From assembly GCA_010909165.1 (NCBI GenBank), contig MU008156.1, positions 806,001 to 870,000 of the forward strand: DNA of 64,000 bases, given 5' to 3'. Shown here in pieces: positions 1 through 42,045 of this stretch. The position numbers and the translations under genes were made by a program. How positions within the stretch are numbered: position 1 is the stretch's first letter; each line of letters opens with the position of its first letter. Under the pieces are notes generated by a model. It was not told the DNA's origin. It saw only the letters and a program-made list of their open reading frames with translations, and searched no databases. The DNA is from Anthoceros angustus. Its lineage: Eukaryota > Plantae > Anthocerotophyta.

Positions 1-2244
1 CTCCGTGACGCTGGTGGATCCAAGGAGGGACTCTAGCAGTATCCATGGTGTTGGAGGATCGTGAAGAGGCGCATGTTTCTGTGAGCCACGGCGAAGGTGG
101 ATATTTCATACGTAATCTACAACGGAGAGTAGCTCAAAATTAGGGCCCATGATAGAGGAGACTCTAGAATTAGAATCGAGTGGAGGAGACTCTAGAATCC
201 ATGCATATGGCGGCGAAGAGTCCAAAATCGACTCCATGGCGGAGGAGAGTCCGAATCAAAATCCACGGTGGAGGAGACTCCACAACCAAAATCCACTAGA
301 AGGAAGGATACAAAATGTATTTTGTCAAATATCCAAAGCCTCTTGAAAGTTCATACAATGGAAAAATTGCATCAAAGGAGCTTGAAGTGAAGTGGTATCA
401 GGAGTGCGAGATGTTTTACATGCTGGAGTTGTATTCAAAAGGTATGAGAAGGACAACGTGCTCACTATGTTGAAAAGCAGTGCAACTAGCTCAACTCATG
501 AGTTAGACCTTGCTAAACTACAAAGACAAAAACTAGCTTAGAACAAGAGATAAAACAGCTTCAACAAGAAGGGAATTAGAAAATGAAAAGCAACAGAAGC
601 ATATCAAGAGCTCCAAGCATTGCATGTGGAGAAGAATGCGGAGCATGAAGCATACAATGAAAATCGCAAAGGGATCGAAATATTATGTTATTGGCAAAAG
701 AAAAGGACAAGGCTGCACTTGAGGTGGAATGTAAAAAGCAAGTCGAAACATTTTTTCCTTGTGGAATGCTAGTAGCTCAACATTTCAAATCGTTATATTT
801 GTGCGAATGAGTTGAGAACATTGTATCGACTAGGCAATCGCAGACGGAAGAACACTATCGGATGAAGAGTTGTTATCTTTGAAATTTGAAATACGGAAGA
901 TCCACCAGTGCTTCCGGACCTTCAATGTATAAAAATATTGATGAATCTGATTCAATAGGCTTAAAATGTTGCACAAGAAGAAGGACTACAGGCATCCACC
1001 GCATTGCCCAAGAAGGGACTACAGCATCCACCGCATTGCCCAAGAAGGATTACAGGCATCCACCACATTGCCCAAAAGGACAACAGCATCAACGACATTG
1101 ACTAGAAAGGGACTACAAACATCCACAATTGAAAGTATACAGTGCATCCACGGCACCGCCATTGCCCAAGAAGGGACTAGGCATCCATAGTTGAAAGTGT
1201 CTGTGCTCCATCCACGGCGCCGCCATTGCCCAAAGAGGGACTACAGGCAGCTGAAAGTATACAAGTCGCATCCACACCCGCCATTGCCCAAAGAGGGACT
1301 ACAGCATCCACAAAAAGTATACAGGCTCCATCCACATCTCCGCCATTGCCCAAGAAGGGATTACAGGCATCCACAACTAAAAGTACACATGCTCCATCCA
1401 CGCCCGCCATTGCCCAAAGAGGGACTACAAGCATCCACAGTTGAAAGTATACAGGCATCCACCGCATTGCCCAAAAGGGACTACAGCATCTATGTTATTG
1501 ATTGGAAAGGGACTACAGGCATCCACGCCACCATTGCCGGGCGCCCAAGAAGGTCTACAGCATCCACGACCCTCATGGAGGAGCTATGACATCCACGACA
1601 CCACTTAGGTTGACTCGCATGGAGAAGCAAAACAAAAAGTCACAAAAGAGCAAAAGTCTATCGATCAACATGGAAAGAAAAGATATGATTACAACTCGAA
1701 TGCCAATATTTTTCGTGCTTAGAAGTTGATGATGGTTGCGAAATGGATGGCATGTCATCAATTCCAAAGCCGGGAGGTTGTGAGAAAAACAACTCATGGG
1801 GTCTCAAAGGCCCATGTTGACAAAGCAAATTCGTGTTTTGGATGCTGATCGGTAAAAATGCAATAATTCACTAGCCTTGAAGATATCAATGCCTATTGGG
1901 GACGAAGATACATTTTTGATAAGGACTCTCAAAAGAACTTCAATGCAATTCTTGGTGCCAACCATTTCCATGACACATGTCTACTTCCTAATGAAGACCC
2001 TTTGAATGCCATGCATTCTAGAGCAATAGCAAGGCCTCATAAGGCAAGTGGTCACAAGGCTTCAAAGAAAAAAGGGAGAGTTGCGCCTGGTCTGGATCAA
2101 GAAAAACAGTCTTCATATGCATGTTTTGGTCCCGATCAAGAAAAAAAGTCTTCATATGCATGTTTTGGAGCACGTGGTTGGATTTTCCTAGCTATTTTTA
2201 TTGTTATTGGTGTGATGATTGCCTATATGTGCTTTTCACGTTAA
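1..2244 (+). CDS. PPI: Array copy 1 (5'-truncated by the window): PPI-like coiled-coil, tail-anchored repeat protein; frameshifted as assembled
   Basis: Fragments MIEETLELES, YKMYFVKYPKP, ...DGRTLSDEE, P/T-rich repeats and RGWIFLAIFIVIGVMIAYMCFSR* (ORF 2002-2244) are collinear on the + strand. Confidence 0.6.
315..869 (+). other. PPI-family core domain (shown for copy 1; present in every copy)
   Basis: Indel-corrected consensus: MYFVKYPKPLESSYNGKIASKELE...AYQELQALHxEKNAEHEAYNENRK...LAKEKDKAALEVECKKQVETFFSLWNASSSTFRNRYICANELRTLYRLGTADGRTLSDEE. This parallels recalled PPI motifs FY(L/F)VKY...ADKELE, EVEKF.SLW...FR.DY and TL.RL.T.DGR.L...E. Needs HMM confirmation. Confidence 0.7.
985..1560 (+). 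repeat. Coding minisatellite (~30-60 bp units) encoding ASTAPPLPKEGLQASTVESIQ-type repeats; present in each copy
   Basis: Recurring ccgccattgcccaaagagggactacaggcatccac and ttgaaagtatacag units. Confidence 0.9.
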
Positions 2245-3313
2245 GTTTTCGAATGACTCAAGCAAGTTTATTTTTTGTAGTACTGTCGCTATGATGTAAG
2301 CAAGTTCACTTGAAAAATACTCCTATGTTCTCAAATTTTTAATTTTATTTTCACCAAGAGATGAGTTTTTTCATATCTTTGTCTTATTACAAATTCCATG
2401 TATTGCTCTGCTTAGTATGGTGCTAGTTTGTTTGAACAACTTAGATGGTTGGGGGATCGGGAGGAGGGTACGCAGAACCATCGAGCTATGCTACCTCCCA
2501 TAGCATCGATCCCACGTGTATTGTCGCTTGTTCAGTATATCCTACATATGGCACGGTGTCAGTAGAATTCTTAACATGCAGATTTTGTTACAAGCATGCC
2601 TTCACATGTAAAGACCATCAAGTAGTAGATCCTCCAAAAGGAAACCTTGTACTTCTAAGTCCATCAAATACTAAGCCCATCCAAGAAAACCAATACCACC
2701 AATATGACCAGTTCACTGGTTTATCATAGAATAATCTTCCAATCCATACATTCTTATTAAATTTGAGCATACATTTCACTTACCTTAAGCTCCAAAGCTA
2801 GCCTTTTCTATAAGCAGACTTGCCATAATTGCATTGCTAATTTTGGGACTCCTTACAACGACACATGTATGGACTACCCCTATAGGCAACATTCTCTATA
2901 AATTACATAGTAATATATATAAGCGTGTTTCCAAGCATATAACTACTTCTATAAGCATGACTTGTTAATGTATATAGTTCTTAGTTTACCTCATTTTATT
3001 TTCTTATTGTATTTCAATCGTTCTTATTTCTAGCTTTATACAACTATTTTAGGGATGGTTCTAAGTTAGAAGTTCATACCCCTATATGAGGATATAGGCT
3101 AGTACAAAGTCAAAGCAAGACTACATACTCCAAGAAAAAATCTCGATAGTTCACACTATTGTGCTATATATGTAAATACAACATTTGATTGAGCTCAAGA
3201 AGCTTTATGAGTTACTTGAGTTTTTCGAATCAAAATTATTCGCCTTCGTCAAATCTCCCTTGTACGTAAATCAAACTTGTGACCTAGTTGCCTAAATCAC
3301 GTGGGGCATCAAG
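2245..3313 (+). promoter_or_regulatory. Inter-copy spacer (3' UTR plus promoter), 1069-1085 bp in all six complete instances
   Basis: AT-rich and near-identical between copies. A TATATA motif at 3165-3170 lies ~145 bp before the ATG. Regulatory function is inferred. Confidence 0.55.
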
Positions 3314-6300
3314 ATGAGCACGATGGAGAAGACTTCAAAAGCCGCGGTGTTAGAGGAGACTACAAGACCCACCGTAGTGGAGGAGACTCTAGCACCCACG
3401 ATGGTGGAGAGACTCTAGCGCCCATGGTGGTGGAGGAGTCAACAGGACCCAAGGTGATGGCGGAGGAGGAGACTGCAAGAGCCATGGCGGTGGCCGAGCT
3501 CAAGACTCTAGCATCCACCGTGGGGAAGAGGAGGAGACTAGTACAACAAGAGCATGCATGGTGGAGAAGGAGGAGCATACTACAGAGCCACGGTCATGGT
3601 GGAGGCGGAGGAGACTCCAGCAGCCACGGTCATGTTGGAGGCGAGGAGGAGGAGCATCTGCAAGAGCCATAGTCATGGTGGAGGAGGAGGAGCATCTGCA
3701 GGAGCCACAGTCATGTTGGAGGCGGAGGAGACTCCAACAGCCTGAGGAGGAGGAGCATCGCACGAGCCATAGTCATGGTGGAGGAGGAGGAGACTACAAG
3801 AGCTACGGTGGAGGAGGAGGAGCATATTGCAGCACCCACGGCCATGTTGGAGGCAGGAGACTCCAGCAGCCACGTGGAGGAGGAGGAGCATCTTGCACGA
3901 GCCATAGTCATGGTGGAGGAGGAGGAGACTACAAGAGCTACGGTGGAGGAGGAGGAGCATATTGCAGCACCCACGGTCATGTTGGAGGCAGAGGAGACTC
4001 CAGCAGCAGCCACGATGGAGGAGGAGGAGACTACAAGAGCCACGGTGGTGGGCGAGGAAACTATAAGAACCACGGTGCAGACAATGAGCATACTACAAGA
4101 GCCCCGGAGAAGAGGAGGAGCATATTGAAGGAGCCACGGTCATGGTGGAGGATGAGGAGACTGCAGGCCACGATGGATGGGGAGGAGACTAGAAGAGCCA
4201 CGTGGTGGAGGATGAGGAGACTACAAGAGCCATGGTGGAGGAGGAGGGGCATCTGCAAGAGCCACGGTGGTGGAGGATGAGCGCAGGCTGAGTGCAGCCA
4301 CGGTGGAGGAGGAGGAGACTACAAGACCCACATTGCATGTGGAGGACGAGCATATTGCGACCACGCTCATGGTGGAGGAGGAGACCTAGTAGAAAACCAC
4401 GGTGGAGGAGTCAACAGGACCCAAGGTGATGGCGAGGAGGAGACTGCAAGAGCCATGGCGGTGGCCGAGCTCAAGACTCTAGCATCCACTGTGGGGAAGA
4501 GGAGGAGACTAGTACAACAAGAGCATGCATGGTGGAGAAGGAGGAGCATACTACAGAGCCACCATGGTGGAGGCGGAGGAGACTCCAGCCACAAGTGGAG
4601 GAGGAGGAGCATCTGCAAGAGCCATAGTCATGGTGGAGGAGGAGGAGCATCGCAGAGCCATGCCATGTTGGAGGCAGAGGAGACTCCAACAGCAGCCACG
4701 GGAGGAGGAGGAGCGATCGCACGAGCCATAGTCATGGTGGAGGAGGAGGAGACTACAAGAGCTACGGTGGAGGAGGAGGAGCATATTGCAGCACCCACGG
4801 CCATGTTGGAGGCAGGAGACTCCAGCAGCCACGTGGAGGAGGAGGAGCATCTTGCACGAGCCATAGTCATGGTGGAGGAGGAGGAGACTACAAGAGCTAC
4901 GGTGGAGGAGGAGGAGCATATTGCAGCACCCACGGTCATGTTGGAGGCAGAGGAGACTCCAGCAGCAGCCACGGTGGTGATTGGAGGAGGAGGAGACTAC
5001 AAGAGCCACGGTGGTGGGCGAGGAAACTATAAGAACCACGGTGCAGACAATGAGCATACTACAAGAGCCCCGGAGAAGAGGAGGAGCATATTGAAGGAGC
5101 CACGGTCATGGTGGAGGATGAGGAGACTGCAGGCCACGATGGATGGGGAGGAGACTAGAAGAGCCACGTGGTGGAGGATGAGGAGACTACAAGAGCCATG
5201 GTGGAGGAGGAGGGGCATCTGCAAGAGCCACGGTGGTGGAGGATGAGCGCAGGCTGAGTGCAGCCACGGTGGAGGAGGAGGAGACTACAAGACCCACATT
5301 GCATGTGGAGGACGAGCATATTGCGACCACGCTCATGGTGGAGGAGGAGACCTAGTAGAAACCACGGTGGAGGAGTCAACAGGACCCAAGGTGATGGCGA
5401 GGAGGAGACTGCAAGAGCCATGGCGGTGGCCGAGCTCAAGACTCTAGCATCCACTGTGGGGAAGAGGAGGAGACTAGTACAACAAGAGCATGCATGGTGG
5501 AGAAGGAGGAGCATACTACGGAGCCACCATGGTGGAGGCGGAGGAGACTCCAGCCACAAGTGGAGGAGGAGGAGCATCTGCAAGAGCCATAGTCATGGTG
5601 GAGGAGGAGGAGCATCGCAGAGCCATGCCATGTTGGAGGCAGAGGAGACTCCAACAGCAGCCACGGGAGGAGGAGGAGCGATCGCACGAGCCATAGTCAT
5701 GGTGGAGGAGGAGGAGACTACAAGAGCTACGGTGGAGGAGGAGGAGCATATTGCAGCACCCACGGTCATGTTGGAGGCAGGAGACTCCAGCAGCCACGTG
5801 GAGGAGGAGGAGCATCTTGCACGAGCCATAGTCATGGTGGAGGAGGAGGAGACTACAAGAGCTACGGTGGAGGAGGAGGAGCATATTGCAGACCCACGGT
5901 CATGTTGGAGGCAGAGACTCCAGCAGCAGCCACAGTGGAGGAGGAGGAGACTACAAGAGCCACGGTGGTGGACGATGAGGAAACTATAAGAACCACAGTG
6001 ACAATGAGCATACTACAAGAGCCCCGGAGAAGAGGAGGAGCATATTGAAGGAGCCACGGTCATGGTGGAGGATGAGGAGACTGCAGGCCACGATGGATGG
6101 GGAGGAGACTAGAAGAGCCACGTGGTGGAGGATGAGGAGACTACAAGAGCCATGGTGGAGGAGGAGGGGCATATCGCACGAGCCACGTGGTGGAGGATGA
6201 GCGATCGCAGTGCAGCCACGGTGGAGGAGGAGGAGACTACAAGACCCACATTGCATGTGGAGGACGAGCATATTGCAGCGACCACGCTCATGGTGGAGGA

Positions 6301-6843
6301 TGAGGAAACTACAGGAGCCAAGATGGAGGAGGAGGAGACTACACGAGCCACGTGGTGGAGGAGGCTGCAGTGCTACCCACACGCTGGTGAAGGAGGAGGA
6401 GACTACAGGAGCCACGGTGGCGGAGGAGACTCCAAGACTACCCAAGATGGTGGAAGAGGAGCATACTACAGGAGCCACGTAATGGTGGACGAGGAGAATA
6501 TTACGACGCTACGGTGATGGAGGAAGAGGAGGAGACTCAACAGCAGCCACAATGGTCAAGAAGGAGGAGGAGACCCTAGTAGAAACCACGGTGGTGGTGG
6601 AGGAGGTGGAGACTCCAACATGCGCAGACCGACGGTGGTGGAGGATGAGGAGGAGTCTCAAACAACATCAACGGTGGTGATTACGGAGGAGGAGACTCTA
6701 GCGGCCGTGGTGGATCCGAAGGAGGGACTCTAGCGGTATCCATGGTGTTGGAGGATCGGGAAGAGGCGCATGTTTCAGAGCCACGGCGAAGGTGGATATT
6801 TCATACGTAATCTACAACGGAGAGTAGCTCAAAATTAGGGCCC
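3314..6843 (+). repeat. GAG-rich coding minisatellite encoding MVEEEETTRATVEEEEHIAAPTVMLEAEETP-type acidic repeats; length varies per copy
   Basis: Repeated gtggaggaggaggagactacaagagc and gcacgagccatagtcatg modules. Confidence 0.92.
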
Positions 6844-9800
6844 ATGATAGAGGAGACTCTAGAATTAGAATCGATGGAGGAGACTCTAGAATCCATGCAT
6901 ATGGCGGCGAAGAGTCCAAAATCGACTCCATGGCGGAGGAGAGTCCGAATCAATCCACGGTGGAGGAGACTCAACCAAAATCCACGGAAGGATACAAAAT
7001 GTATTTTGTCAAATATCCAAAGCCTCTTGAAAGTTCATACAATGGAAAAATTGCATCAAAGGAGCTTGAAGTGAAGTGGTATGTGAGTGCGAGATGTTTT
7101 ACATGCTGGAGTTGTATTCAAAAGGTATGAGAAGGACAACGTGCTCACTATGTTGAAAGCGGCTCGTGCAACTAGCTCAACTCATGAGTTAGACCTTGCT
7201 AAACTACAAAGACAAAAACTAGCTTAGAACAAGAGATAAAACGACTTCAACAAGAAGGGAATTAGAAAATGAAAAGCAATGTAGCATATCAAGAGCTCCA
7301 AGCATTGCACAGGAGAAGAATGCGGAGCATGAAGCATACAATGAAAATCGCAAAGGGATCGTAAATATTATGTTATTGGCAAAAGAAAAGGACAAGGCTG
7401 CACTTGAGGTGGAATGTAAAAGCAAGTCGAAACATTTTTTCCTTGTGGAATGCTAGTAGCTCAACATTTCAAATCGTTATATTTGTGCGAATGAGTTGAG
7501 AACATTGTATGCTAGGCACCTAGCGAAGAACACTATCGGATGAAGAGTTGTTATCTTTGAAATTTGAAATACCGTAAGATCCACTGCTTCCGGACCTTCA
7601 ATGTATAAAAATATTGATGATACAGATTTCAATAGGCTTAAAAATGTTGCACAAGAAGAAAATTATGGACTGTGCATCCACCGCATTGCCCAAGAAGGAC
7701 TCTGAGGCATCCACCGTGCCCAAGAAGGATTACAGCATCCACCACATTGCCCAAAAGGGACAACAGCATCAACGACATTGACTAGAAAAGGACTACAAAC
7801 ATCCACAATTGAAAGTATACAGTCGCATCCACGGCACCGCCATTGCCCAAGAAGGACTACAGGCATCCATAGTTGAAAGTGTGCTCCATCCACGGCGCCG
7901 CCATTGCCCAAAGAGGGACTCTGAGGCATCCGCAGCTGAAAGTACTGCATCCACTCCGCCATTGCCCAAAGAGGGACTGAGCATCCACTAAAAGTATACA
8001 GCTCCATCCACATCTCCGCCATTGCCCAAAGAGGGACTACAGCATCCACAACTAAAAGTACACATGCTCCATCCACAGCCCGCCATTGCCCAAAGAGGGA
8101 CTACAAGCATCCAGTTGAAAGTATACAGCATCCACCGCATTGCCCAAGAAGGACTACAGCATCTATGTTATTGATTGGAAAGGGACTACAGGCATCCACA
8201 GGCGCCACCATTGCGGCGCCCAAAGAGGGACTCTGAGGCATCCACGACAATTCCCGCGGAGGAGCTACAGACATCCACGACACCACTTAGGTTGACTCGC
8301 ATGGAGAAGCAAAACAAAAAGTCACAAAAGAGCAAAAGTCTATCGATCAACATGGAAAGAAAAGATATGATTACAACTCGAATGCCAATATTTTTCGTGC
8401 TTAGAAGTTGATGATGGTTGCGAAATGGATGGCATGTCATCAATTCCAAAGTCGGAGGTTGTGAGAAAAACAACTCATGGGGTCTCAAAGGCCCATGTTG
8501 ACAAAGCAAATTCGTGTTTGGATGCTGATCGACTAAAATGCAGAAGAACACTATCGGATGAAGAGTTGTTATCTTTGAAATTTGAAATACCGTAAGATCC
8601 ACTGCTTCCGGACCTTCAATGTATAAAAATATTGATGATACTGATTCCAATAGGCTTAAAAATGTTGCACAAGAAGAAAATTCGGACTCTGTGCATCCAC
8701 CGCATTGCCCAAGAAGGACTGGCATCCACCGCATTGCCCAAGAAGGGATTACAGGCATCCACCACATTGCCCAAAAGGGACAACAGCATCAACGACATTG
8801 ACTAGAAAGGGACTACAAACATCCACAATTGAAAGTATACAGTGCATCCACGCACCGCCATTGCCCAAGAAGGACTACAGGCATCCATAGTTGAAAGTGT
8901 ACAGGCTCCATCCACGGCGCCGCCATTGCCCAAAGAGGGACTCTGAGGCATCCGCAGCTGAAAGTATACAGTGCATCCACGCCTCCGCCATTGCCCAAAG
9001 AGGGACTGGCATCCACAACTAAAAGTATACAGCTCCATCCACATCTCCGCCATTGCCCAAAGAGGGACTACAGGCATCCACAACTAAAAGTACACATGCT
9101 CCATCCACTCCGCCATTGCCCAAAGAGGGACTACAAGCATCCATGCTTGAAAGTATACAGCATCCACCGCATTGCCCCAAAAGGGACTCTGCATCTATGT
9201 TATTGATTGGAAAGGGACTACAGGCATCCACGCCACCATTGCGGCGCCCAAGAAGGTCTACAGCATCCACGACAATTCCATGAGGAGCTACAGACATCCA
9301 CGACACCACTTAGGTTGACTCGCATGGAGAAGCAAAACAAAAAGTCACAAAGAGCAAAAGTCTATCGATCAACATGGAAAGAAAAGATATGATTACAACT
9401 CAATGCCAATATTTTTCGTGCTTAGAAGTTGATGATGGTTGCGAAATGGATGGCATGTCATCAATTCCAAAGCCGCCGGAGGTTGTGAGAAAAACAACTC
9501 ATGGGGTCTCAAAGGCCCATGTTGACAAAGCAAATTCGTGTTTTGGATGCTGATCGGGTAAAAATGCAATAATTCACTAGCCTTGAAGATATCAATGCCT
9601 ATTGGGGACGAAGATACATTTTTGATAAGGACTCTCAAAAGAACTTCAATGCAATTCTTGGTGCCAACCATTTCCATGACACATGTCTACTTCCTAATGA
9701 AGACCCTTTGAATGCCATGCATTCTAGAGCAATAGCAAGGCCTCATAAGGCAAGTGGTCACAAGGCTTCAAAGAAAAAGGGAGAGTTGCGCTGGTCCGGA

Positions 9801-9945
9801 TCAAGAAAAAAGTCTTCATATGCATGTTTTGGTCCCGATCAAGAAAAAGTCTTCATATGCATGTTTTGGAGCACGTGGTTGGATTTTCCTAGCTATTTTT
9901 ATTGTTATTGGTGTGATGATTGCCTATATGTGCTTTTCACGTTAA
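3314..9945 (+). CDS. PPI: Array copy 2: PPI-like repeat protein with two internal duplications (~965 bp and ~1020 bp); frameshifted as assembled
   Basis: ATG 3314 (MSTMEKTSKAAVLEETT) to TM stop 9945, with the same module order as the other copies. Confidence 0.55.
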
Positions 9946-11015
9946 GTTTTCGAATGACTCAAGCAAGTTTATTTTTGTAGCACGGTGTCGCTATGATGTA
10001 AGCAAGTTCACTTGAAAATACTCCTATGTTCTCAAATTTTTAATTTTATTTTCACCAAGAGATGAGTTTTTCATATCTTTGTCTTATTACAAATTCCATG
10101 TATTGCTCCTGCTTAGTATGGTGCTAGTTTGTTTGAACAACTTAGATGGTTGGGGGATCGGGAGGGAGGGTACGCAGAACCATCGAGCTATGCTACCTCC
10201 CATAGCATCGATCCCACGTGTATTGTCGTTGTCTAGTATATCCTACATATGGCACCTGTCTAGTAGAATTCTTAACATGCATTTTGTTACAAGCATGCCT
10301 TCACATGTAAAGACCATCAAGTAGTAGATCCTCCAAAAGGAAACCTTGTACTTCTAAGTCCATCAAATACTAAGCCCATCCAAGAAAACCAATACCACCA
10401 ATATGACTGTTCACTGGTTTATCATAGAATAATCTTCCAATCCATACATTCTTATTAAATTTGAGCATACATTTCACTTACCTTAAGCTCCAAAGCTAGC
10501 CTTTTCTATAAGCCGCAGACTTGCCATAATTGCATTGCTAATTTTGGGACTCCTTACAACGACACATGTATGGACTACCCCTATAGGCAACATTCTCTAT
10601 AAATTACATAGTAATATATATAAGCGTGTTTCCAAGCATATAACTACTTCTATAAGCATGACTTGTTAATGTATATAGTTCTTAGTTTACCTCATTTTAT
10701 TTTCTTATTGTATTTCACCGGTTCTTATTTCTAGCTTTATACAACTATTTTAGGGATGGTTCTAAGTTAGGAAGTTCATACCCCTATATGAGGATATAGG
10801 CTAGTACAAAGTCAAAGCGATTACTACATACTCCAAGAAAAAATCTCGATAGTTCACACTATTGTGCTATATATGTAAATACAACATTTGATTGAGCTCA
10901 AGAAGCTTTATGAGTTACTTGAGTTTTTCGAATCAAAATTATTCGCCATCGGTCAAATCTCCTTGTACGTAAATCAAACTTGTGACCTAGTTGCCTAAAT
11001 CTGTGGGGCATCAAG

Positions 11016-14000: not shown

Positions 14001-15558
14001 ATTATGTTATTGGCAAAAGAAAAGGACAAGGCTGCACTTGAGGTGGAATGTAAAAGCAAGTCGAAACATTTTTTCCTTGTGGAATGCTAGTAGCTCAACA
14101 TTTCAAATCGTTATATTTGTGCGAATGAGTTGAGAACATTGTATCGACTAGGCAATCGCAGACGGAAGAACACTATCGGATGAAGAGTTGTTATCTTTGA
14201 AATTTGAAATACCGTAAGATCCACCGCTTCCGGACCTTCAATGTATAAAAATATTGATGATCTGATTCCAATAGGCTTAAAATGTTGCACAAGAAGAAAA
14301 TTCGGACTACAGCATCCACCGCATTGCCCAAGAAGGACTGGCATCCACCGCATTGCCCAAGAAGGGATTACAGTATCCACCACATTGCCCAAAAGGACAA
14401 CAGCATCAACGACATTGACTAGAAAGGGACTACAAACATCCACAATTGAAAGTATACAGTGCATCCACGGCACCGCCATTGCAAGAAGGACTACAGTGCA
14501 TCCATAGTTGAAAGTGCATGTGCTCCATCCACGGCGCCGCCATTGCCCAAGAAGGGATTACAGGCATCCGCAGCTGAAAGTATACAGCCGCATCCACAGC
14601 CCGCCATTGCCCAAAGAGGGACCATGTGCATCCGCCTAAAAGTATGTGCTCCATCCACATCTCCGCCATTGCCCAAAGAGGGACTAGGCATCCACAACTA
14701 AAAGTACACATGCTCCATCCACAGCCCGCCATTGCCCAAAGAGGGACTACAAGCATCCACAGTTGAAAGTATACAGCATCCACCGCATTGCCCAAAAGGG
14801 ACTACAGGCATCTATGTTATTGATTGGAAAGGGACTACAGGCATCCAGGCCACCATTGCCGGCGCCCAAGAAGGTCTGTGCATCCACGAATTCCCCGCGG
14901 AGGAGCTATGACATCCACGACACCACTTAGGTTGACTCGCATGGAGAAGCAAAACAAAAAGTCACAAAAGAGCAAAAGTCTATCGATCAACATGGAAAGA
15001 AAAGATATGATTACAACTCGAATGCCAATATTTTTCGTGCTTAGAAGTTGATGATGGTTGCGAAATGGATGGCATGTCATCAATTCCAAAGTCGGAGGTT
15101 GTGAGAAAAAACAACTCATGGGGTCTCAAAGGCCCATGTTGACAAAGCAAATTCGTGTTTGATGCTGATCGTGGTAAAAATGCAATAATTCACTAGCCTT
15201 GAAGATATCAATGCCTATTGGGGACGAAGATACATTTTGATAAGGACTCTCAAACGAACTTCAATGCAATTCTTGGTGCCAACCATTTCCATGACACATG
15301 TCTACTTCCTAATGAAGACCCTTTGAATGCCATGCATTCTAGAGCAATAGCAAGGCCTCATAAGGCAAGTGGTCACAAGGCTTCAAAGAAAAAGGGAGAG
15401 TTACCGGTCCGGATCAAGAAAACAGTCTTCATATGCATGTTTTGGTCCCGATCAAGAAAAAGTCTTCATATGCATGTTTTGGAGCACGTGGTTGGATTTT
15501 CCTAGCTATTTTTATTGTTATTGGTGTGATGATTGCCTATATGTGCTTTTCACGTTAA
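11016..15558 (+). CDS. PPI: Array copy 3: PPI-like repeat protein, about 1500 aa if indels are corrected
   Basis: ORF 13478-13828 reads continuously from MIEETLELES through KMYFVKYPKPLESSYNGKIASKELEVKWY to KRYEKDNVLTMLK; TM stop at 15558. Confidence 0.6.
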
Positions 15559-27371: not shown

Positions 27372-28439
27372 GTTTTCGAATGACTCAAGCAAGTTTATTT
27401 TTGTAGTACTGTCGCTATGATGTAAGCAAGTTCACTTGAAAATACTCCCTATGTTCTCAAATTTTTAATTTTATTTTCACCAAGAGATGAGTTTTTTCAT
27501 ATCTTTGTCTTATTACAAATTCCATGTATTGCTCTGCTTAGTATGGTGCTAGTTTGTTTGAACAACTTAGATGGTTGGGGGATCGGGAGGGAGGGCAGGT
27601 AAACCATCGAGCTATGCTACCTCCCATAGCATCGATCCCACGTGTATTGTCGCGGTTCAGTATATCCTACATATGGCACCGTTCAGTAGAATTCTTAACA
27701 TGCAGATTTTGTTACAAGCATGCCTTCACATGTAAAGACCATCAAGTAGTAGATCCTCCAAAAGGAAACCTTGTACTTCTAAGTCCATCAAATACTAAGC
27801 CCATCCAAGAAAACCAATACCACCAATATGACCAGTTCACTGGTTTATCATAGAATAATCTTCCAATCCATACATTCTTATTAAATTTGAGCATACATTT
27901 CACTTACCTTAAGCTCCAAAGCTAGCCTTTTCTATAAGCCGCAGACTTGCCATAATTGCATTGCTAATTTTGGGACTCCTTACAACGACATGTATGGACA
28001 CCCCTATAGGCAACATTCTCTCTATAAATTACATAGTAATATATATAAGCGTGTTTCCAAGCATATAACTACTTCTATAAGCATGACTTGTTAATGTATA
28101 TAGTTCTTAGTTTACCTCATTTTATTTTCTTATTGTATTTCACGGTTCTTATTTCTAGCTTTATACAACTATTTTAGGGATGGTTCTAAGTTAGAAGTTC
28201 ATACCCTATATGAGGATATAGGCTAGTACAAAGTCAAAGCAAGACTACATACTCCAAGAAAAAAATCTCGATAGTTCACACTATTGTGCTATATATGTAA
28301 ATACAACATTTGATTGAGCTCAAGAAGCTTTATGAGTTACTTGAGTTTTTTCGAATCAAAATTATTCGCCATCGGTCAAATCTCCCTTGTACGAAATCAA
28401 ACTTGTGACCTAGTTGCCTAAATGTCGTGGGGCATCAAG

Positions 28440-31400: not shown

Positions 31401-32094
31401 AAGGTCTACAGGTGCATCCACGACAATTCCCGGAGGAGCTAGACATCCACGACACCACTTAGGTTGACTCGCATGGAGAAGCAAAACAAAAAGTCACAAA
31501 AGAGCAAAAGTCTATCGATCAACATGGAAAGAAAAGATATGATTACAACTCGAATGCCAATATTTTTCGTGCTTAGAAGTTGATGATGGTTGCGAAATGG
31601 ATGGCATGTCATCAATTCCAAAGTCGCATCGGAGGTTGTGAGAAAAAACAACTCATGGGGTCTCAAAGGCCCATGTTGACAAAGCAAATTCGTGTTTGGA
31701 TGCTGATCGGGTAAAATGCAATAATTCACTAGCCTTGAAGATATCAATGCCTATTGGGGACGAAGATACATTTTTGATAAGGACTCTCAAAAGAACTTCA
31801 ATGCAATTCCGGTGCCAACCATTTCCATGACACATGTCTACTTCCTAATGAAGACCCTTTGAATGCCATGCATTCTAGAGCAATAGCAAGGCCTCATAAG
31901 GCAAGTGGTCACAAGGCTTCAAAGAAAAAGGAGAGTTGCACAGTCCGGATCAAGAAAACAGTCTTCATATGCATGTTTTGGTCCCGATCAAGAAAAAGTC
32001 TTCATATGCATGTTTTGGAGCACGTGGTTGGATTTTCCTAGCTATTTTTATTGTTATTGGTGTGATGATTGCCTATATGTGCTTTTCACGTTAA
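28440..32094 (+). CDS. PPI: Array copy 6: shortest PPI-like repeat protein, about 1220 aa if indels are corrected
   Basis: Same modules as the other copies; the acidic N-terminal region is only ~1.57 kb (28440-30010). Confidence 0.6.
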
Positions 32095-33167
32095 GTTTTC
32101 GAATGACTCAAGCAAGTTTATTTTTGTAGCACGGTGTCGCTATGATGTAAGCAAGTTCACTTGAAAAATACTCCCTATGTTCTCAAATTTTTAATTTTAT
32201 TTTCACAAGAGATGAGTTTTTTCATATCTTTGTCTTATTACAAATTCCATGTATTGCTCTGTTTAGTATGGTGCTAGTTTGTTTGAACAACTTAGATGGT
32301 TGGGGGATCGGGAGGAGGGTACGGTAACCATCGAGCTATGCTACCTCCCATAGCATCGATCCCACGTGTATTGTCGTTGTCTAGTATATCCTACATATGG
32401 CACGGTTCAGTAGAATTCTTAACATGCGATTTTGTTACAAGCATGCCTTCACATGTAAAGACCATCAAGTAGTAGATCCTCCAAAAGGAAACCTTGTACT
32501 TCTAAGTCCATCAAATACTAAGCCCATCCAAGAAAACCAATACCACCAATATGACCAGTTCCTGGTTTATCATAGAATAATCTTCCAATCCATACATTCT
32601 TATTAAATTTGAGCATACATTTCACTTACCTTAAGCTCCAAAGCTAGCCTTTTCTATAAGCCGCAGACTTGCCATAATTGCACGATTGCTAATTTTGGGA
32701 CTCCTTACAACGACACATGTATGGACTACCCCTATAGGCAACATTCTCTCTATAAATTACATAGTAATATATATAAGCGTGTTTCCAAGCATATAACTAC
32801 TTCTATAAGCATGACTTGTTAATGTATATAGTTCTTAGTTTACCTCATTTTATTTTCTTATTGTATTTTCACTTGGTTCTTATTTCTAGCTTTATACAAC
32901 TATTTTAGGGATGGTTCTAAGTTAGGAAGTTCATACCCCTATATGAGGATATAGGCTAGTACAAAGTCAAAAGCGACTACATACTCCAAGAAAAATCTCG
33001 ATAGTTCACACTATTGTGCTATATATGTAAATACAACATTTGATTGAGCTCAAGAAGCTTTATGAGTTACTTGAGTTTTTTCGAATCAAAATTATTCGCC
33101 TTCGGTCAAATCTCCCTTGTCGTAAATCAAACTTGTGACCTAGTTGCCTAAATCGTGGGGCATCAAG

Positions 33168-36100
33168 ATGAGCACGATGGAGAAGACTTCAAAAGCGGTG
33201 TTAGAGGAGACTACAAGACCCACCGTAGTGGAGGAGACTCTAGCACCCACGATGGTGGAGAGACTCTAGCGCCCATGGTGGTGGAGGAGTCAACAGGACC
33301 CAAGGTGATGGCGGAGGAGGAGACTGCAAGAGCCATGGCGGTGGCCGAGCTCAAGACTCTAGCATCCACTGGGGGAAGAGGAGGAGACTAGTACAACAAG
33401 AGCCTGCATGGTGGAGAAGGAGGAGCATACTACAGAGCCACAGTCATGGTGGAGGCGGAGGAGACTCAGCAGCCATGGTGGAGGAGGAGGAGCATCTGCA
33501 AGAGCCATAGTCATGGTGGAGGAGGAGGAGCATCTGCAGAGCCACAGTCATGGTGGAGGAGGAGGAGACTGCAAGAGCCACAGTGGAGGAGGAGGAGCGT
33601 CACGAGCCATAGTCATGGTGGAGGAGGAGGAGACTACAAGAGCTACGGTGGAGGAGGAGGAGCATATTGCAGCACCCACGGTCATGTTGGAGGCAGAGGA
33701 GACTCCAGCAGCAGCCTGTGGAGGAGGAGGAGCATCTTGCACGAGCCATAGTCATGGTGGAGGAGGAGGAGACTACAAGAGCTACGGTGGAGGAGGAGGA
33801 GCATATTGCAGCACCCACGGTCATGTTGGAGGCAGAGGAGACTCCAGCAGCCACAGTGGAGGAGGAGACTACAAGAGCCACGGTGGTGGACGATGAGGAA
33901 ACTATAAGAACCACGTGCAGACAATGAGCATACTACAAGAGCCCCGGAGAAGAGGAGGAGCATATTGAAGGAGCCACGGTCATGGTGGAGGATGAGGAGA
34001 CTGCAGGCCACGATGGATGGGGAGGAGGAGACTAGTACAACAAGAGCCTGCATGGTGGAGAAGGAGGAGCATACTACAGAGCCACAGTCATGGTGGAGGC
34101 GGAGGAGACTCAGCAGCAGTGGAGGAGGAGGAGCATCTGCAAGAGCCATAGTCATGGTGGAGGAGGAGGAGCATCTGCAGAGCCAGTCATGTTGGAGGCG
34201 AGGAGACTCCAGCCAGTGGAGGAGGAGCGTCGCACGAGCCATAGTCATGGTGGAGGAGGAGGAGACTACAAGAGCTACGGTGGAGGAGGAGGAGCATATT
34301 GCAGCACCCACGGTCATGTTGGAGGCGAGGAGACTCCAGCAGCCACAGTGGAGGAGGAGGAGCATCGCACGAGCCATAGTCATGGTGGAGGAGGAGGAGA
34401 CTACAAGAGCTACGGTGGAGGAGGAGGAGCATATGCAGCACCCACGGTCATGTTGGAGGCAGAGGAGACTCAGCAGCCACGTGGAGGAGGAGGAGACTAC
34501 AAGAGCCACGGTGGTGGGCGATGAGGAAACTATAAGAACCACGGTGACAATGAGCATACTACAAGAGCCCCGGAGAAGAGGAGGAGCATATTGAAGGAGC
34601 CACGGTCATGGTGGAGGATGAGGAGACTGCAGGCCACGATGGATGGGGAGGAGACTAGAAGAGCCACAGTGGTGGAGGATGAGGAGACTACAAGAGCCAC
34701 GGTGGAGGAGGGGCATCGCACGAGCCACAGTCGTGGTGGAGGATGAGGAGGCTGCAGTGCAGCCACGGTGGAGGAGGAGGAGACTACAAGACCCACATTG
34801 CATGTGGAGGACGAGCATATTGCAGCCGACCACGCTCATGGTGGAGGATGAGGAAACTACAGAGCCAAGTGGTGGAGGATGAGGAGACTACAAGAGCCAC
34901 GGTGGAGGAGGAGGGGCATCTTGCACGAGCCACGGCCGTGGTGGAGGAGGAGGCTGCAGTGCAGCCACGGTGGAGGAGGAGGAGACTACAAGACCCACAT
35001 TGCATGTGGAGGACGAGCATATTGCAGCCGACCACGCTCATGGTGGAGGATGAGGAGACTACAGGAGCCAAGATGGAGGAGGAGGAGACTACACGAGCCA
35101 CGGTGGTGGAGGAGGCTGCAGTGCTACCCACACGCGTGGTGAAGGAGGAGGAGACTACAGGAGCCACGGTGGCGGAGGAGACTCCAGACTACCCAAGATG
35201 GTGGAAGAGGAGCATACTACAGAGCCACAGAATGGTGGTGGACGAGGAGAATATTACAGGCCTACGGTGATGGAGGAAGAGGAGGAGACTCCAAGCAGCC
35301 ACAATGGTCAAGAAGGAGGAGGAGACCCTAGTAGAAACCACGGTGGTGGTGGAGGAGGAGGAGACTACAAGAGCCATGGTGGAGGAGGAGCATCTGCAAG
35401 AGCCACGGTGGTGGAGGATGAGGAGGAGTCTCAAACAACATCAACGTGGTGATTCGGAGGAGGAGACTCTAGCGGTGGTGGATCCGAAGGAGGGACTCTA
35501 GCAGATCCATGGTGTTGGAGGATCGGGAAGAGGCGCATGTTTGAGAGCCACAGAATGGTGGACGAGGAGAATATTACGACGCTACGGTGATGGAGGAAGA
35601 GGAGGAGACTCAACAGAGCCACAATGGTCAAGAAGGAGGAGGAGACCCTAGTAGAAACCACGGTGGTGGTGGAGGAGGTGGAGACTCCAACATGCGCCGC
35701 ACCGACGGTGGTGGAGGATGAGGAGGAGTCTCAAACAACATCAACGTGGTGATTCCGGAGGAGGAGACTCCAGCAGCCACGGTGGATCCGAAGGAGGGAC
35801 TCTAGCAGATCCATGGTGTTGGAGGATCGGGAAGAGGCGCATGTTTGAGCCACGGCGAAGGTGGATATTTCATATCTGAATCTACAACGGAGAGTAGCTC
35901 AAAATTAGGGCCCATGATAGAGGAGACTCTAGAATTAGAATCCGGAGGAGACTCTAGAATCCATGCATATGGCGAAGAGTCCAAAATCGACTCCATGGCG
36001 GAGGAGAGTCCGAATCAAAATCCACGGTGGAGGAGACTCCACAACCAAAATCCACAGAAGGATACAAAATGTATTTTGTCAAATATCCAAAGCCTCTTGA

Positions 36101-39100
36101 AAGTTCATACAATGGAAAAATTGCATCAAAGGAGCTTGAAGTGAAGTGGTATCTGAGTGCGAGATGTTTTACATGCTGGAGTTGTATTCAAAAGGTATGA
36201 GAAGGACAACGTGCTCACTATGTTGAAAAGCACTCGTGCAACTAGCTCAACTCATGAGTTAGACCTTGCTAAACTACAAAGACAAAAACTAGCTTAGAAC
36301 AAGAGATAAAACAGCTTCAACAAGAAGGGAATTAGAAAATGAAAAGCAATGAGCATATCAAGAGCTCCAAGCATTGCAGAGAAGAATGCGAGCATGAAGC
36401 ATACAATGAAAATCGCAAAGGGATCAAATATTATGTTATTGGCAAAAGAAAAGGACAAATGCACTTGAGGTGGAATGTAAAAAGCAAGTCGAAACATTTT
36501 TTCCTTGTGGAATGCTAGTAGCTCAACATTTCAAATCGTTATATTTGTGCGAATGAGTTGAGAACATTATCGACTAGGCACCGCAGACGGAAGAACACTA
36601 TCGGATGAAGAGTTGTTATCTTTGAAATTTGAAATACCGGAAGATCCACGTGCTTCTGACCATCAATGTATAAAAATATTGATGATACAGATTCAATAGG
36701 CTTAAAAATGTTGCACAAGAAGAAAATTATGGACTACGGGCATCCACCGCATTGCCCAAGAAGGACTACATCCACCGCATTGCCCAAGAAGGGATTACAG
36801 CATCCACCACATTGCCCAAAAGGGACAACAGCATCAACGACATTGACTAGAAAGGGACTACAAACATCCACAATTGAAAGTATACAGCTCCATCCACGGC
36901 ACCGCCATTGCCCAAGAAGGACTACAGGCATCCATAGTTGAAAGTGTGGGCTCCATCCACAGGCGCCGCCATTGCCCAAAGAGGGACTACAGCATCCACA
37001 GTTGAAAGTATACAAGTGCATCCACAGCTCGCCATTGCCCAAAGAGGGACTACAGCATCCACTAAAAGTACAGCTCCATCCACATCTCCGCCATTGCCCA
37101 AAGAGGGACTACAGCATCCACAACTAAAAGTACACATGCTCCATCCAGCTCCGCCATTGCCCAAAGAGGGACTACAAGCATCCACAGTGGAGGAGACTCC
37201 ACAACCAAAATCCACGGCAGAAGGATACAAAATGTATTTTGTCAAATATCCAAAGCCTCTTGAAAGTTCATACAATGGAAAAATTGCATCAAAGGAGCTT
37301 GAAGTGAAGTGGTATCAGGAGTGCGAGATGTTTTACATGCTGGAGTTGTATTCAAAAGGTATGAGAAGGACAACGTGCTCACTATGTTGAAAGCTCGTGC
37401 AACTAGCTCAACTCATGAGTTAGACCTTGCTAAACTACAAAGACAAAAACTAGCTTAGAACAAGAGATAAAACTTCAACAAGAAGGGAATTAGAAAATGA
37501 AAAGCAGAAAGCATATCAAGAGCTCCAAGCATTGCAGGAGAAGAATGCGAGCATGAAGCATACAATGAAAATCGCAAAGGGATCGAAATATTATGTTATT
37601 GGCAAAAGAAAAGGACAAGGCTGCACTTGAGGTGGAATGTAAAAAGCAAGTGAAACATTTTTTCCTTGTGGAATGCTAGTAGCTCAACATTTCAAATCGT
37701 TATATTTGTGCGAATGAGTTGAGAACATTGTATCGACTAGGCACCGCAGACGGAAGAACACTATCGGATGAAGAGTTGTTATCTTTGAAATTTGAAATAC
37801 CGGAAGATCCACGTGCTTCTGACCATCAATGTATAAAAATATTGATGATACAGATTCAATAGGCTTAAAAATGTTGCACAAGAAGAAAATTGGACTACAG
37901 GCATCCACCATTGCCCAAGAAGGACTACAGGCATCCACCGCATTGCCCAAGAAGGGATTACAGGCATCCACATTGCCCAAAAGGGACAACAGCATCAACG
38001 ACATTGACTAGAAAGGGACTACAAACATCCACAATTGAAAGTATCTGCATCCACGGCACCGCCATTGCAGAAGGACTACGCATCCATAGTTGAAAGTGTG
38101 GGCTCCATCCAGGCGCCATTGCCCAAAGAGGGACTACAGCATCCAGCTGAAAGTATACAAGCCGCATCCACCGCCATTGCCCAAAGAGGGACTGAGGCAT
38201 CCACGGCTAAAAGTATAGCTCCATCCACATCTCCGCCATTGCCCAAAGAGGGACTACAGCATCCACAACTAAAAGTACACATGCTCCATCCACAGCTCCG
38301 CCATTGCCCAAAGAGGGACTACAAGCATCCACGGTGGAGGAGACTCCACAACCAAAATCCACGGCAGAAGGATACAAAATGTATTTTGTCAAATATCCAA
38401 AGCCTCTTGAAAGTTCATACAATGGAAAAATTGCATCAAAGGAGCTTGAAGTGAAGTGGTATCAGGAGTGCGAGATGTTTTACATGCTGGAGTTGTATTC
38501 AAAAGGTATGAGAAGGACAACGTGCTCACTATGTTGAAAGCGGCTCGTGCAACTAGCTCAACTCATGAGTTAGACCTTGCTAAACTACAAAGACAAAAAC
38601 TAGCTTAGAACAAGAGATAAAACAGCTTCAACAAGAAGGGAATTAGAAAATGAAAAGCAAGAGCTCCAAGCATTGCAGAGAAGAATGCGGAGCATGAAGC
38701 ATACAATGAAAATCGCAAAGGGATCGAAATATTATGTTATTGGCAAAAGAAAAAGGACAAGGCTGCACTTGAGGTGGAATGTAAAAAGCAAGTCGAAACA
38801 TTTTTTCCTTGTGGAATGCTAGTAGCTCAACATTTCAAATCGTTATATTTGTGCGAATGAGTTGAGAACATTGTATCGACTAGGCACTGCAGACGGAAGA
38901 ACACTATCGGATGAAGAGTTGTTATCTTTGAAATTTGAAATACCGGAAGATCCACCGTGCTTCTCGGACCATCAATGTATAAAAATATTGATGATCTGAT
39001 TCAATAGGCTTAAAAATGTTGCACAAGAAGAAAATTACGGACTACGAGGCATCCACCGCATTGCCCAAGAAGGACTGAGGCATCCACCGCATTGCCCAAG

Positions 39101-42045
39101 AAGGGATTACAGCATCCACCACATTGCCCAAAAGGGACAACAGGCATCAACGACATTGACTAGAAAGGGACTACAAACATCCACAATTGAAAGTATCTGC
39201 ATCCACGGCACCGCCATTGCAGAAGGACTACAGCATCCATAGTTGAAAGTGTCAGGCTCCATCCAGGCGCCGCCATTGCCCAAAGAGGGACTACAGGCAT
39301 CCACAGTTGAAAGTATACAAGTGCATCCAGCTCGCCATTGCCCAAAGAGGGACTACAGCATCCACGGCTAAAAGTATAGCTCCATCCATCTCCGCCATTG
39401 CCCAAAGAGGGACTACAGGCATCCACAACTAAAAGTACACATGCTCCATCCATCCGCCATTGCCCAAGAGGGACTACAAGCATCCACAGTTGAAAGTATA
39501 CAGGCATCCACCGCATTGCCCAAAAGGGACTGAGGCATCTATGTTATTGATTGGAAAGGGACTACAGCATCCACAGGCGCCACCATTGCGGTGCCCCAAA
39601 GAAGGTCTACAGGCATCCACGACAATTCCCGGAGGAGCTACGGACATCCACGACACCACTTAGGTTGACTCGCATGGAGAAGCAAAACAAAAAGTCACAA
39701 AGAGCAAAAGTCTATCGATCAACATGGAAAGAAAAGATATGATTACAACTCGAATGCCAATATTTTTCGTGCTTAGAAGTTGATGATGGTTGCGAAATGG
39801 ATGGCATGTCATCAATTCCAAAGTCGGGAGGTTGTGAGAAAAAACAACTCATGGGGTCTCAAAGGACCATGTTGACAAAGCAAATTCGTGTTTTGGATGC
39901 TGATCGTAAAAATGCAATAATTCACTAGCCTTGAAGATATCAATGCCTATTGGGGACGAAGATACATTTTTGATAAGGACTCTCAAAAGAACTTCAATGC
40001 AATTCTGGTGCCAACCATTTACATGACACATGTCTACTTCCTAATGAAGACCCTTTGAATGCCATGCATTCTAGAGCAATAACAAGGCCTCATAAGGCAA
40101 GTGGTCACAAGGCTTCAAAGAAAAAGGGAGAGTTACTTTGGTGGATCAAGAAAAAGTCTTCATATGCATGTTTTGGAGCACGTGGTTGGATTTTCCTAGC
40201 TATTTTATTGTTATTGGTGTGATGATTGCCTATATGTGCTTTTTACATTTGGAGTTGTATTCAAAAGGTATGAGAAGGACAACGTGCTCACTATGTTGAA
40301 AGCTCGTGCAACTAGCTCAACTCATGAGTTAGACCTTGCTAAACTACAAAGACAAAAACTAGCTTAGAACAAGAGATAAAACTTCAACAAGAAGGGAATT
40401 AGAAAATGAAAAGCAGAAAGCATATCAAGAGCTCCAAGCATTGCAGGAGAAGAATGCGAGCATGAAGCATACAATGAAAATCGCAAAGGGATCGAAATAT
40501 TATGTTATTGGCAAAAGAAAAAGGACAAGGCTGCACTTGAGGTGGAATGTAAAAAGCAAGTGAAACATTTTTTCCTTGTGGAATGCTAGTAGCTCAACAT
40601 TTCAAATCGTTATATTTGTGCGAATGAGTTGAGAACATTGTATCGACTAGGCACTGCAGACGGAAGAACACTATCGGATGAAGAGTTGTTATCTTTGAAA
40701 TTTGAAATACCAGAAGATCCACCAGTGCTTCTCGGACCATCAATGTATAAAAATATTGATGATACAGATTCCAATAGGCTTAAAAATGTTGCACAAGAAG
40801 AAAATTCTGGACTACAGGCATCCACCGCATTGCCCAAGAAGGACTGGCATCCACCGCATTGCCCAAGAAGGGATTACAGGCATCCACCACATTGCCCAAA
40901 AGGGACAACAGGCATCAACGACATTGACTAGAAAGGGACTACAAACATCCACAATTGAAAGTATCTGAGCTGCATCCACGGCGCCGCCATTGCCCAAGAA
41001 GGACTACAGCATCCATAGTTGAAAGTGTCTGTGCTCCATCCAGGCGCCGCCATTGCCCAAGAGGGACTACGAGGCATCCATTGAAAGTATACAAGTGCAT
41101 CCACAGCCCGCCATTGCCCAAAGAGGGACTACTGAGGCATCCACTAAAAGTATCAGGCTCCATCCATCTCCGCCATTGCCCAAAAGGGACAACAGGCATC
41201 CACAACTAAAAGTACACATGCTCCATCCACAGCCCGCCATTGCCCAAAGAGGGACTACAAGCATCCACAGTTGAAAGTATACAGGCATCCACCGCATTGC
41301 CCAAAAGGGACTGCATCTATGTTATTGATTGGAAAGGGACTACAGGCATCCACAGGCCACCATTGCGGTGCCCCAAAGAAGGTCTACAGGCATCCACGAC
41401 AATTCCAGCGGAGGAGCTAGACATCCACGACACCACTTAGGTTGACTCGCATGGAGAAGCAAAACAAAAAGTCACAAAGAGCAAAAGTCTATCGATCAAC
41501 ATGGAAAGAAAAGATATGATTACAACTCGAATGCCAATATTTTTTCGTGCTTAGAAGTTGATGATGGTTGCGAAATGGATGGCATGTCATCAATTCCAAA
41601 GCTGTCGGGAGGTTGTGAGAAAAAAACAACTCATGGGGTCTCAAAGGACCATGTTGACAAAGCAAATTCGTGTTTGGATGCTGATCAGGGTAAAAAATGC
41701 AATAATTCACTAGCCTTGAAGATATCAATGCCTATTGGGGACGAAGATACATTTTTTGATAAGGACTCTCAAAAGAACTTCAATGCAATTCCTGGTGCCA
41801 ACCATTTACATGACACATGTCTACTTCCTAATGAAGACCCTTTGAATGCCATGCATTCTAGAGCAATAGCAAGGCCTCATAAGGCAAGTGGTCACAAGGC
41901 TTCAAAGAAAAAAGGGAGAGTTGCGCCTGGTCCGGATCAAGAAAAAAAGTCTTCATATGCATGTTTTGGAGCACGTGGTTGGATTTTCCTAGCTATTTTT
42001 ATTGTTATTGGTGTGATGATTGCCTATATGTGCTTTTTACATTAA
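33168..42045 (+). CDS. PPI: Array copy 7 (terminal, rearranged): four successive PPI-core/C-terminal segments
   Basis: Back-jumps into the core at ~37185, ~38330 and ~40248. The final ORF 41575-42045 gives the cleanest C-terminus, ending GWIFLAIFIVIGVMIAYMCFLH*. Confidence 0.5.

Follow-up and report, generated by a model that had tools for sequence, protein, structure and literature searches.

The highly repetitive DNA at positions 1-42045 of a 64,000-nucleotide stretch of Anthoceros angustus contig MU008156.1 (the whole stretch analysed is termed the window) raises two linked questions: whether a true cluster of amplified genes lies beneath its many frame breaks, and whether the encoded proteins belong to the proton pump interactor (PPI) family, as had been proposed from the sequence letters (the sequence-only reading). 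We favor, with a probability of about 0.6, a very young and real tandem cluster in which one lineage-specific gene is present at least seven times, situated in a repeat that short-read polishing of a Nanopore-based assembly left uncleaned.

Organization of the tandem array

Self-BLAST and piece-wise BLAST resolved the region into one partial and six full units, arranged head-to-tail on the + strand (Table 1), with unit starts placed by self-BLAST at 3, 6708, 13335, 19154, 25146, 29871 and 35781. Because base 1 of the window falls within a unit, seven units is a lower bound. The six full units range from 4.7 to 8.8 kb in length. Every unit proceeds from Glu-rich 33-bp repeats to a core, a Ser/Thr/Pro repeat of approximately 66 bp, and a tail with a C-terminal hydrophobic anchor and stop; a 1.15-kb spacer follows the stop in unit order. 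The sequence-only reading had claimed about seven tandem copies sharing one order of parts (acidic repeat, core, Pro/Thr-type repeat, anchor, stop): the array is borne out by self-BLAST and its multi-copy state by variant ratios in reads (below), the order is the same in all units, and the last stop was found as claimed. Its view that the gene is inflated also stands, although the coding size per unit spans a wider range (from approximately 1190 to 2900 codons) than the 1200-1650 residues it gave. Individual parts occur in different numbers: there are seven pre-core stretches, ten helical cores that are complete or nearly so, 11 core 3' ends, eight tails and six spacers. Unit 1 contains a 1-kb internal duplication, and the last unit carries four cores and one tail-to-core fusion.

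Table 1. Units of the array and selected features, in window coordinates
Feature	Position	Strand	Parts and remarks
Unit 0, cut by window edge	1-3400	+	pre-core repeat 1-300; core 300-960; S/T/P repeat 960-1620; tail 1620-2244 (stop 2242-2244); spacer 2250-3400
Unit 1	3400-11102	+	acidic repeat 3400-6707; core 6986-7637; S/T/P repeat 7637-8302; partial tail to 8542; duplication, restart at 8543 (unit position 847); second S/T/P repeat 8655-9325; tail 9325-9951; spacer 9951-11102
Unit 2	11102-16729	+	acidic repeat 11102-13334; core 13625-14276; S/T/P repeat 14276-14942; tail 14942-15564; spacer 15564-16729
Unit 3	16729-22513	+	acidic repeat 16729-19153; core 19439-20083; S/T/P repeat 20083-20741; tail 20741-21357; spacer 21357-22513
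Unit 4, reference unit	22513-28525	+	acidic repeat 22513-25145; pre-core 25146-25430; core 25435-26088; S/T/P repeat 26088-26757; tail 26757-27377; spacer 27377-28525
Unit 5, shortest	28525-33251	+	acidic repeat 28525-29870 (only 1.35 kb); core 30157-30806; S/T/P repeat 30806-31474; tail 31474-32100; spacer 32100-33251
Unit 6, last, rearranged	33251-42045	+	acidic repeat 33251-35780; core plus repeat three times (36057-37188, 37220-38332, 38367-39675); tail 39675-40176; fourth core (5' truncated) 40241-40779; repeat 40779-41452; final tail 41452-42045
Unit 6 junction	40176-40241	+	tail, within hydrophobic anchor, fused to core position ~414; recombinant copy
Glu-rich repeat tract, example	3560-6430	+	33-bp (11-codon) repeat, ~80 copies
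Only fully open tail	41446-42045	+	199 codons plus stop (42043-42045); adjoins unique DNA
C-terminal hydrophobic anchor	41980-42036	+	19 residues, two codons before stop
Real G>T variant	7575	+	makes TAA in presumed frame of core end

Frame breaks and differences between copies

None of the units has an open frame across its whole length, and core, repeat and tail together show 13-15 frame changes per 1.9 kb; the proposal of a single ordered gene per unit running from an ATG was not confirmed as it stood, nor could a start codon be placed. The variation between copies is overwhelmingly of one kind. Indels occur at 67 of 80 variable sites and pure substitutions at the other 13, and 63 of the 80 lie at homopolymers or CG/CHG sites, where chance alone would place about 36. 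Clean, isolated substitutions number just 11 across 2.4 kb of aligned unit, and invariant runs of up to 127 bases separate the garbled spots. One hot spot, at 25606, has seven different spellings among the window copies; a single contig of a DNA run crosses it, with one spelling and a depth of 115, like that of invariant stretches. Contigs of this run have a mean length of 165 bases, suggestive of noisy long reads; the run may be the assembly's own source data. The flanking DNA is clean, containing a 615-codon open reading frame (ORF) without any frame change and a PTR2 exon that matches its Pfam profile unbroken over 206 residues, while another duplicate in the window (42990-44190) has the same indel hot spots. 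In the only fully open tail, homopolymers of at least five bases are one or two bases longer than in inner copies in five of eight cases.

The assembly was produced from PromethION 1D reads with wtdbg and Pilon polishing (PMC7027989). The predominance of indels at homopolymers and CG/CHG sites, together with clean unique flanks, argues for unpolished Nanopore consensus error inside the repeat, and points to such errors as the source of most frame breaks and between-copy differences. Those at CG/CHG sites probably reflect cytosine methylation. Short-read polishing probably failed on the array because the stretch is repeated, and the assembled sequence probably makes the true genes look far more broken than they are. 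Real hypervariable sites were considered and rejected: hardly any substitutions occur, and the hot spots consist of indels in contexts that are problematic for base-calling.

Coding signal and predicted protein

Both repeats, of 33 bp and about 66 bp, have periods close to a multiple of three. The + strand requires 6.7-7.8 frame changes per kb in each of the five units tested, compared with 8.3-10 on the - strand and, on average, 12-13 in shuffled sequence. ORFs of 125-199 codons terminate in the conserved hydrophobic anchor and stop, and the anchor segment is kept in all eight tail copies. One frame of the Glu-rich tract reads V-E-E-E-E-T-T-R-A-T, of the same kind as the V-E-E-T-P-Q-P-K-S-T units just before the core. 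The core cannot be read in a single frame; AlphaFold2 modeled a 54-residue piece as one helix at residues 16-53 (mean pLDDT 60). No intron was detected in the array gene. The encoded protein would begin with a long Glu-rich arm, disordered and built of 11-residue repeats, and continue through a helical core of about 190 residues and some ten 22-residue Ser/Thr/Pro-rich repeats, to end in a tail of about 200 residues whose hydrophobic anchor lies two residues ahead of the stop. This predicted layout, read in part from broken frames, is that of a tail-anchored membrane protein.

Variant ratios in reads

Two variants allow the assembled copy number to be compared with read depth. The stop-making G>T change at 7575 recurs at 8593 and 14215, and is present in three of 11 core-end copies in the window; in the DNA run the T variant accounts for 20.5 of 72.3 depth (28%). 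A CT variant, found in four of six window copies, accounts for 64 of 82.8 depth (77%). The agreement of both read ratios with the assembled copy ratios indicates that the locus is truly multi-copy. The sequence-only reading had held that the lack of a significant match to PPI proteins, the lack of transcripts, or a single copy in accurate reads would speak against it; nominally, neither a match nor transcripts were found, and a single copy is contradicted by the reads.

Alternative explanations

The array might instead consist of dead genes, a frame-shifted founder or a decayed cluster having been amplified by unequal crossing-over, with noise added to real breaks. All ten cores share frame breaks at an A5 run and a T6 run, and nine of the ten are broken at a TTTC/AAATCG site; these shared breaks are either systematic miscalls or real mutations older than the amplification. 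Against dead genes, the shared breaks lie in the exact contexts in which a Nanopore consensus drops bases (runs of at least five, CpG), the copy best placed for polishing has a fully open 199-codon tail, and the + strand is stop-poor in every unit tested. Breaks also persist in the DNA run, where the contig over 25771-26022 contains only two inserted letters, compared with five needed for the corrected frame of the sequence-only reading, and the unit 4 tail is still broken in at least three places after the changes are applied; this evidence for a broken core and tail is heavy only if the run is accurate. No RNA run is listed with the stretch, and the one same-sample RNA run gave no contig on it, which is not proof of absence; homologues were not found either (below). 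A real stop variant in at least three cores, supported by read depth, and the failure to see RNA suggest that the cluster may be silent or decaying, in part or as a whole. As an account of the whole array we consider dead genes doubtful.

We regard as improbable the proposal that the units are true members of the PPI/BIP131 family, amplified and inflated, and acting on the plasma-membrane H+-ATPase. Their predicted architecture would fit that published for PPI1, with its three coiled-coil regions and one transmembrane domain (PMC11394911), and the conserved anchor supplies a hydrophobic segment at the very C-terminus. No search, however, returned a PPI match. Six stop-free pieces had no match in Pfam. 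A profile of the N-terminal core, which kept 45 of 74 columns and lost the YFVKY part, retrieved from 1.84 billion representatives a single spurious match, a bacterial NHL-repeat protein in which a G-x-x-F-x-x-Y-x...T-M-L-K-A-A stretch within the repeats matched by chance. Word-indexed protein searches with the 199-residue tail, the 112-residue core end and the 85-residue core start were blank within a length window that leaves out PPIs of about 600 residues; a protein atlas gave scores at chance level (0.82-0.84); AlphaFold2 models of two pieces (pLDDT 60-61) found nothing usable among Swiss-Prot AlphaFold models; two metagenome scans were blank; and exact-protein look-ups found none of three window ORFs on record. 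Homology queries comprised only stop-free pieces of 45-199 residues, and their blank results are weak evidence against PPI membership.

The link to PPIs derives from an N-terminal Y-F-V-K-Y and a W..F-R..Y...D-G-R motif, which in frame-corrected form resemble motifs of that family and offer a lead. The motifs quoted in the sequence-only reading can be read only if frames are chosen across breaks, a number of which all copies share, and W..F-R..Y...D-G-R emerges only once three frame corrections, unsupported by the DNA run, are made. The helical region of PPIs spans about 300 residues, compared with about 190 in the array core, and no expression was seen. Within the favored reading of the array, kinship with the proton pump interactors is possible, at roughly even odds judged on these motifs. 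A more ambitious version, to which we give slightly less credence than to outright family membership, would envisage a hornwort-specific burst in which a PPI-type tail-anchored regulator gave rise to a cluster of intact proteins of giant size, above 1200 residues, with a polyanionic arm of 11-residue repeats and a Ser/Thr/Pro-repeat stalk, expressed only at stages or under conditions as yet unsampled, and with a role at the membrane that would involve the proton pump, cation binding or wall binding.

It is very improbable that the array was made by assembly, a locus of one or few copies, itself internally repetitive, having been unrolled into many units by a long-read assembler. The use of wtdbg on noisy reads, the differing lengths of repeat tracts between units, and a contig depth in the DNA run that departs from the 10:8:6 proportion of core, tail and spacer would be compatible with such an origin, but the two variants coexist in reads of a haploid plant at the ratios given above, 232 public contigs in several depth tiers cover the 3.4 kb of the reference stretch (25146-28525, unit 4), and variants common to the cores of the last unit follow its duplication structure. 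A non-coding macro-satellite or transposon-derived repeat lacking a gene is equally hard to credit: its repetitive content and the want of homologues and RNA would suit it, but the near-triplet periods, the paucity of stops on the + strand relative to the - strand (five units) and to shuffles on average, and the ORFs closing in a conserved anchor and stop argue otherwise, and the transposon reading was rejected since neither transposase nor terminal repeats were seen.

Origin, significance and comparison with known systems

On the favored reading, the array is a young tandem gene cluster of an ordinary kind. Spacers resemble one another as closely as coding parts do, repeat-tract lengths vary, and there are internal duplications and one fusion; these features indicate that unequal crossing-over created the copies or keeps them alike. 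The chief worth of the locus is as a caution: repeated genes stay unpolished in the A. angustus assembly, frame breaks and copy differences inside its tandem clusters should not be taken as biology, and any annotation of the array is unreliable. Should accurate reads show intact genes, the array would mean that a repeat-inflated, membrane-anchored protein has multiplied very recently and in a lineage-specific manner, in a genome where tandem expansions are already known, and its significance would be modest unless a proton-pump link were proven.

With the PPI family (Arabidopsis PPI1, At4g27500; rice BIP103/BIP131), whose members bind and stimulate the plasma-membrane H+-ATPase, the predicted protein shares a charged, helical and largely polar character and a single hydrophobic segment at the extreme C-terminus. 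It differs in its shorter core, in its length (approximately 1190-2900 codons with huge Glu-rich and Ser/Thr/Pro-rich tracts, versus 612 for PPI), in its occurrence as at least seven tandem copies rather than a small dispersed family, and in that no intron, RNA or sequence match to the family was detected. Tail-anchored membrane proteins, a class defined by one hydrophobic anchor within about 30 residues of the C-terminus and the lack of an N-terminal signal peptide, offer a likeness in the single hydrophobic stretch of about 19-21 residues located two residues before the stop; this is a likeness of topology and not of homology. The N-terminus of the array protein, and with it any signal peptide, is unreadable in the garbled acidic repeat.

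A further comparison is with tandemly arrayed genes, a term applied to genes of one family that lie within 100 kb and have few or no other genes between them (PMC7027989). In A. angustus, 9.8% of genes lie in tandem clusters (Zhang et al. 2020, PMC7027989), and gene families grew mainly through tandem duplication (PMC7027989). The present array, with seven units in 42 kb and nothing between them, resembles these clusters in having same-family members within 100 kb and no genes in its spacers. It differs from them in the near-identity of its copies, which differ by about a dozen clean substitutions and take in the spacers, in its internal repeats, and in an assembled sequence much noisier than its flanks.

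Layout and copy number of the array

The array is genuine: a tandem cluster of very recent origin, made up of a repeat-inflated gene and lying in a part of the assembly that was left unpolished. Besides the head-to-tail units themselves (see table), searches with pieces of the first unit retrieved seven copies of the pre-core stretch, ten of the 650-base core, eight of the 630-base tail and six of the 1.15-kb spacer. A purine-rich tract of 1.35-3.3 kb, made of a 33-bp unit, lies between spacer and pre-core, and core and tail are separated by a 64-66-bp unit repeated about ten times. Unit 1 contains an internal duplication of 1 kb; the last unit (33251-42045) has four cores and one joint at which a tail is fused, within its hydrophobic segment, directly to a core. 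A stop at 42043-42045 closes the array, with unique DNA beyond it; the length of the array is a lower bound, window base 1 falling inside a unit. Because tandem clusters are common in Anthoceros angustus, where they hold 9.8% of genes (PMC7027989), the array itself is ordinary.

Amplification, as proposed in the sequence-only reading, was borne out by reads of one DNA run from the presumed source sample, in which 45% of sampled words were present. Within unit 4, the reference unit, contigs from this run (134-254 bases, depth 92-139) span core, repeat, tail and spacer. At a G/T site, T accounts for 28% of DNA-run depth versus 3 of 11 window copies, and at a TC/CT site, CT accounts for 77% versus four of six. 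Since one copy in a haploid plant could not yield both variants, the multi-copy state is real, with seven units as the minimum. The pre-core repeat of unit 4 (25146-25371) is the one part of the unit lacking a contig, which may reflect heavier errors there or a repeat filter.

Origin of differences between copies

We read the breakage in the copies as mostly assembly error. Runs that are invariant between copies reach 127 bases, interrupted by short garbled spots; variable spots carry indels in 67 of 80 cases (pure substitutions in 13), and 63 of the 80 coincide with a homopolymer or a CG/CHG site, where chance would give about 36. There are 11 clean isolated substitutions in 2.4 kb of aligned unit, and the true inter-copy identity is therefore probably >99.5%. 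Such a pattern is that of uncorrected Nanopore consensus, unlike real paralogue divergence. Unique flanks in the window are clean, as seen in the 615-codon ORF and in a PTR2 exon matching its profile across 206 residues, and a separate 590-base duplicate at 42990-44190 has the identical kind of indel hot spots. The genome was assembled with wtdbg from PromethION 1D reads and polished by Pilon with Illumina reads (PMC7027989), a pipeline that we would expect to leave repeats unpolished.

Over 3.4 kb of unit 4, window and DNA-run contigs disagree by indels at 68 sites. One hot spot has seven spellings among ten window copies and a single spelling in the DNA run, whose sole contig there has a depth (115) similar to that of invariant stretches. 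Its contigs average 165 bases, which points to noisy long reads as their source; the run may also be the very data behind the assembly, and it therefore cannot decide the true spelling. At 27089, the sole contig (depth 139) lacks one base present in five of eight window copies; the long tail ORF is open with the window spelling and broken with that of the run, which suggests systematic errors in the DNA run too.

Reading frames, intact or decayed

The giant gene envisaged in each unit has its ordered parts, but no copy is open throughout. One frame of the 33-bp tract encodes an 11-residue Glu-rich repeat, similar units of which extend up to the core, and the tail encodes a hydrophobic stretch of 19-21 residues two codons ahead of a conserved stop; the protein is probably tail-anchored. 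Over the 1.9 kb that run from the core to the stop, 13-15 frame changes are needed in each of the five units tested, about half as many as shuffled sequence needs; the opposite strand needs more in every one of them. A stop-poor, coding-like signal therefore exists without an open gene. When the ten cores are reduced to a majority consensus, about eight frame jumps are still required.

Evidence on intact versus dead genes points both ways. Counted for intact genes are the breaks common to all cores, whose sites are two homopolymers (A5 and T6) and a CpG, and the sole tail copy adjoining unique DNA, a position in which read pairs can be anchored; this copy is open for 199 codons up to its stop. 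In that copy five of eight runs of at least 5 bases exceed the inner copies by 1-2 bases, as polishing of under-called homopolymers would give. Counted for decay, the T variant of the G/T site, read-supported, creates TAA in the presumed frame of three cores, and the unit-4 tail stays broken after the DNA-run changes are applied. The corrected core frame of the sequence-only reading needs five added bases over 25771-26022, whereas the DNA-run contig, of uncertain accuracy, adds only two, also counted for decay. Transcripts of the array gene were not found; no RNA run was listed as containing it, and a same-sample RNA run gave nothing on the unit 4 stretch.

Neighbouring features

Features located in the window
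Feature	Coordinates	Strand	Description
Head-to-tail array units	starts 3, 6708, 13335, 19154, 25146, 29871, 35781	+	window self-comparison
615-codon ORF	45942-47789	+	intact, no intron
PTR2/NPF-type peptide or nitrate transporter exons	56332-57180, 57328-57885	-	Pfam PF00854, E = 3e-50
15-bp microsatellite	59200-59290	+	~8 copies; repeated S-T-A-Q-H in one ORF
312-codon ORF	62495-63433	+	C-terminal half matches papain-family protease domain from profile position 71 on

For the 615-codon ORF, neither a Pfam match nor an exact protein record was found; hydrophobic stretches lie close to each of its ends, one about 10 residues ahead of its stop. The clean PTR2/NPF exons act as a quality control on the assembly. 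In the 312-codon ORF, the part expected to carry the catalytic cysteine is unmatched by the papain-family profile. The duplicate beyond the array comprises two tandem ~590-base copies, 97% alike, of a retrotransposon-like fragment, which on visual inspection looks like the terminal part of a copia-type polymerase; their 10 gaps lie at CCCG, CTCG and GCG sites, an error pattern as in the array.

Relation to proton pump interactors

Two short motifs of the array gene presumably resemble those of proton pump interactors (PPIs). On this likeness we put the odds of its being a PPI at about even, and do not file it as one. Homology searches with stop-free pieces as queries were all blank or spurious; the word-indexed protein search admits only proteins 0.55-1.75 times the query length, full-length plant PPIs being out of range, and the N-terminal columns dropped out of the single exhaustive profile search. 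PPI1, at 612 residues, combines three coiled-coil regions with a single transmembrane domain and binds the C-terminus of the H+-ATPase (PMC11394911). Helix is weakly predicted in the array gene, and a C-terminal hydrophobic anchor is present.
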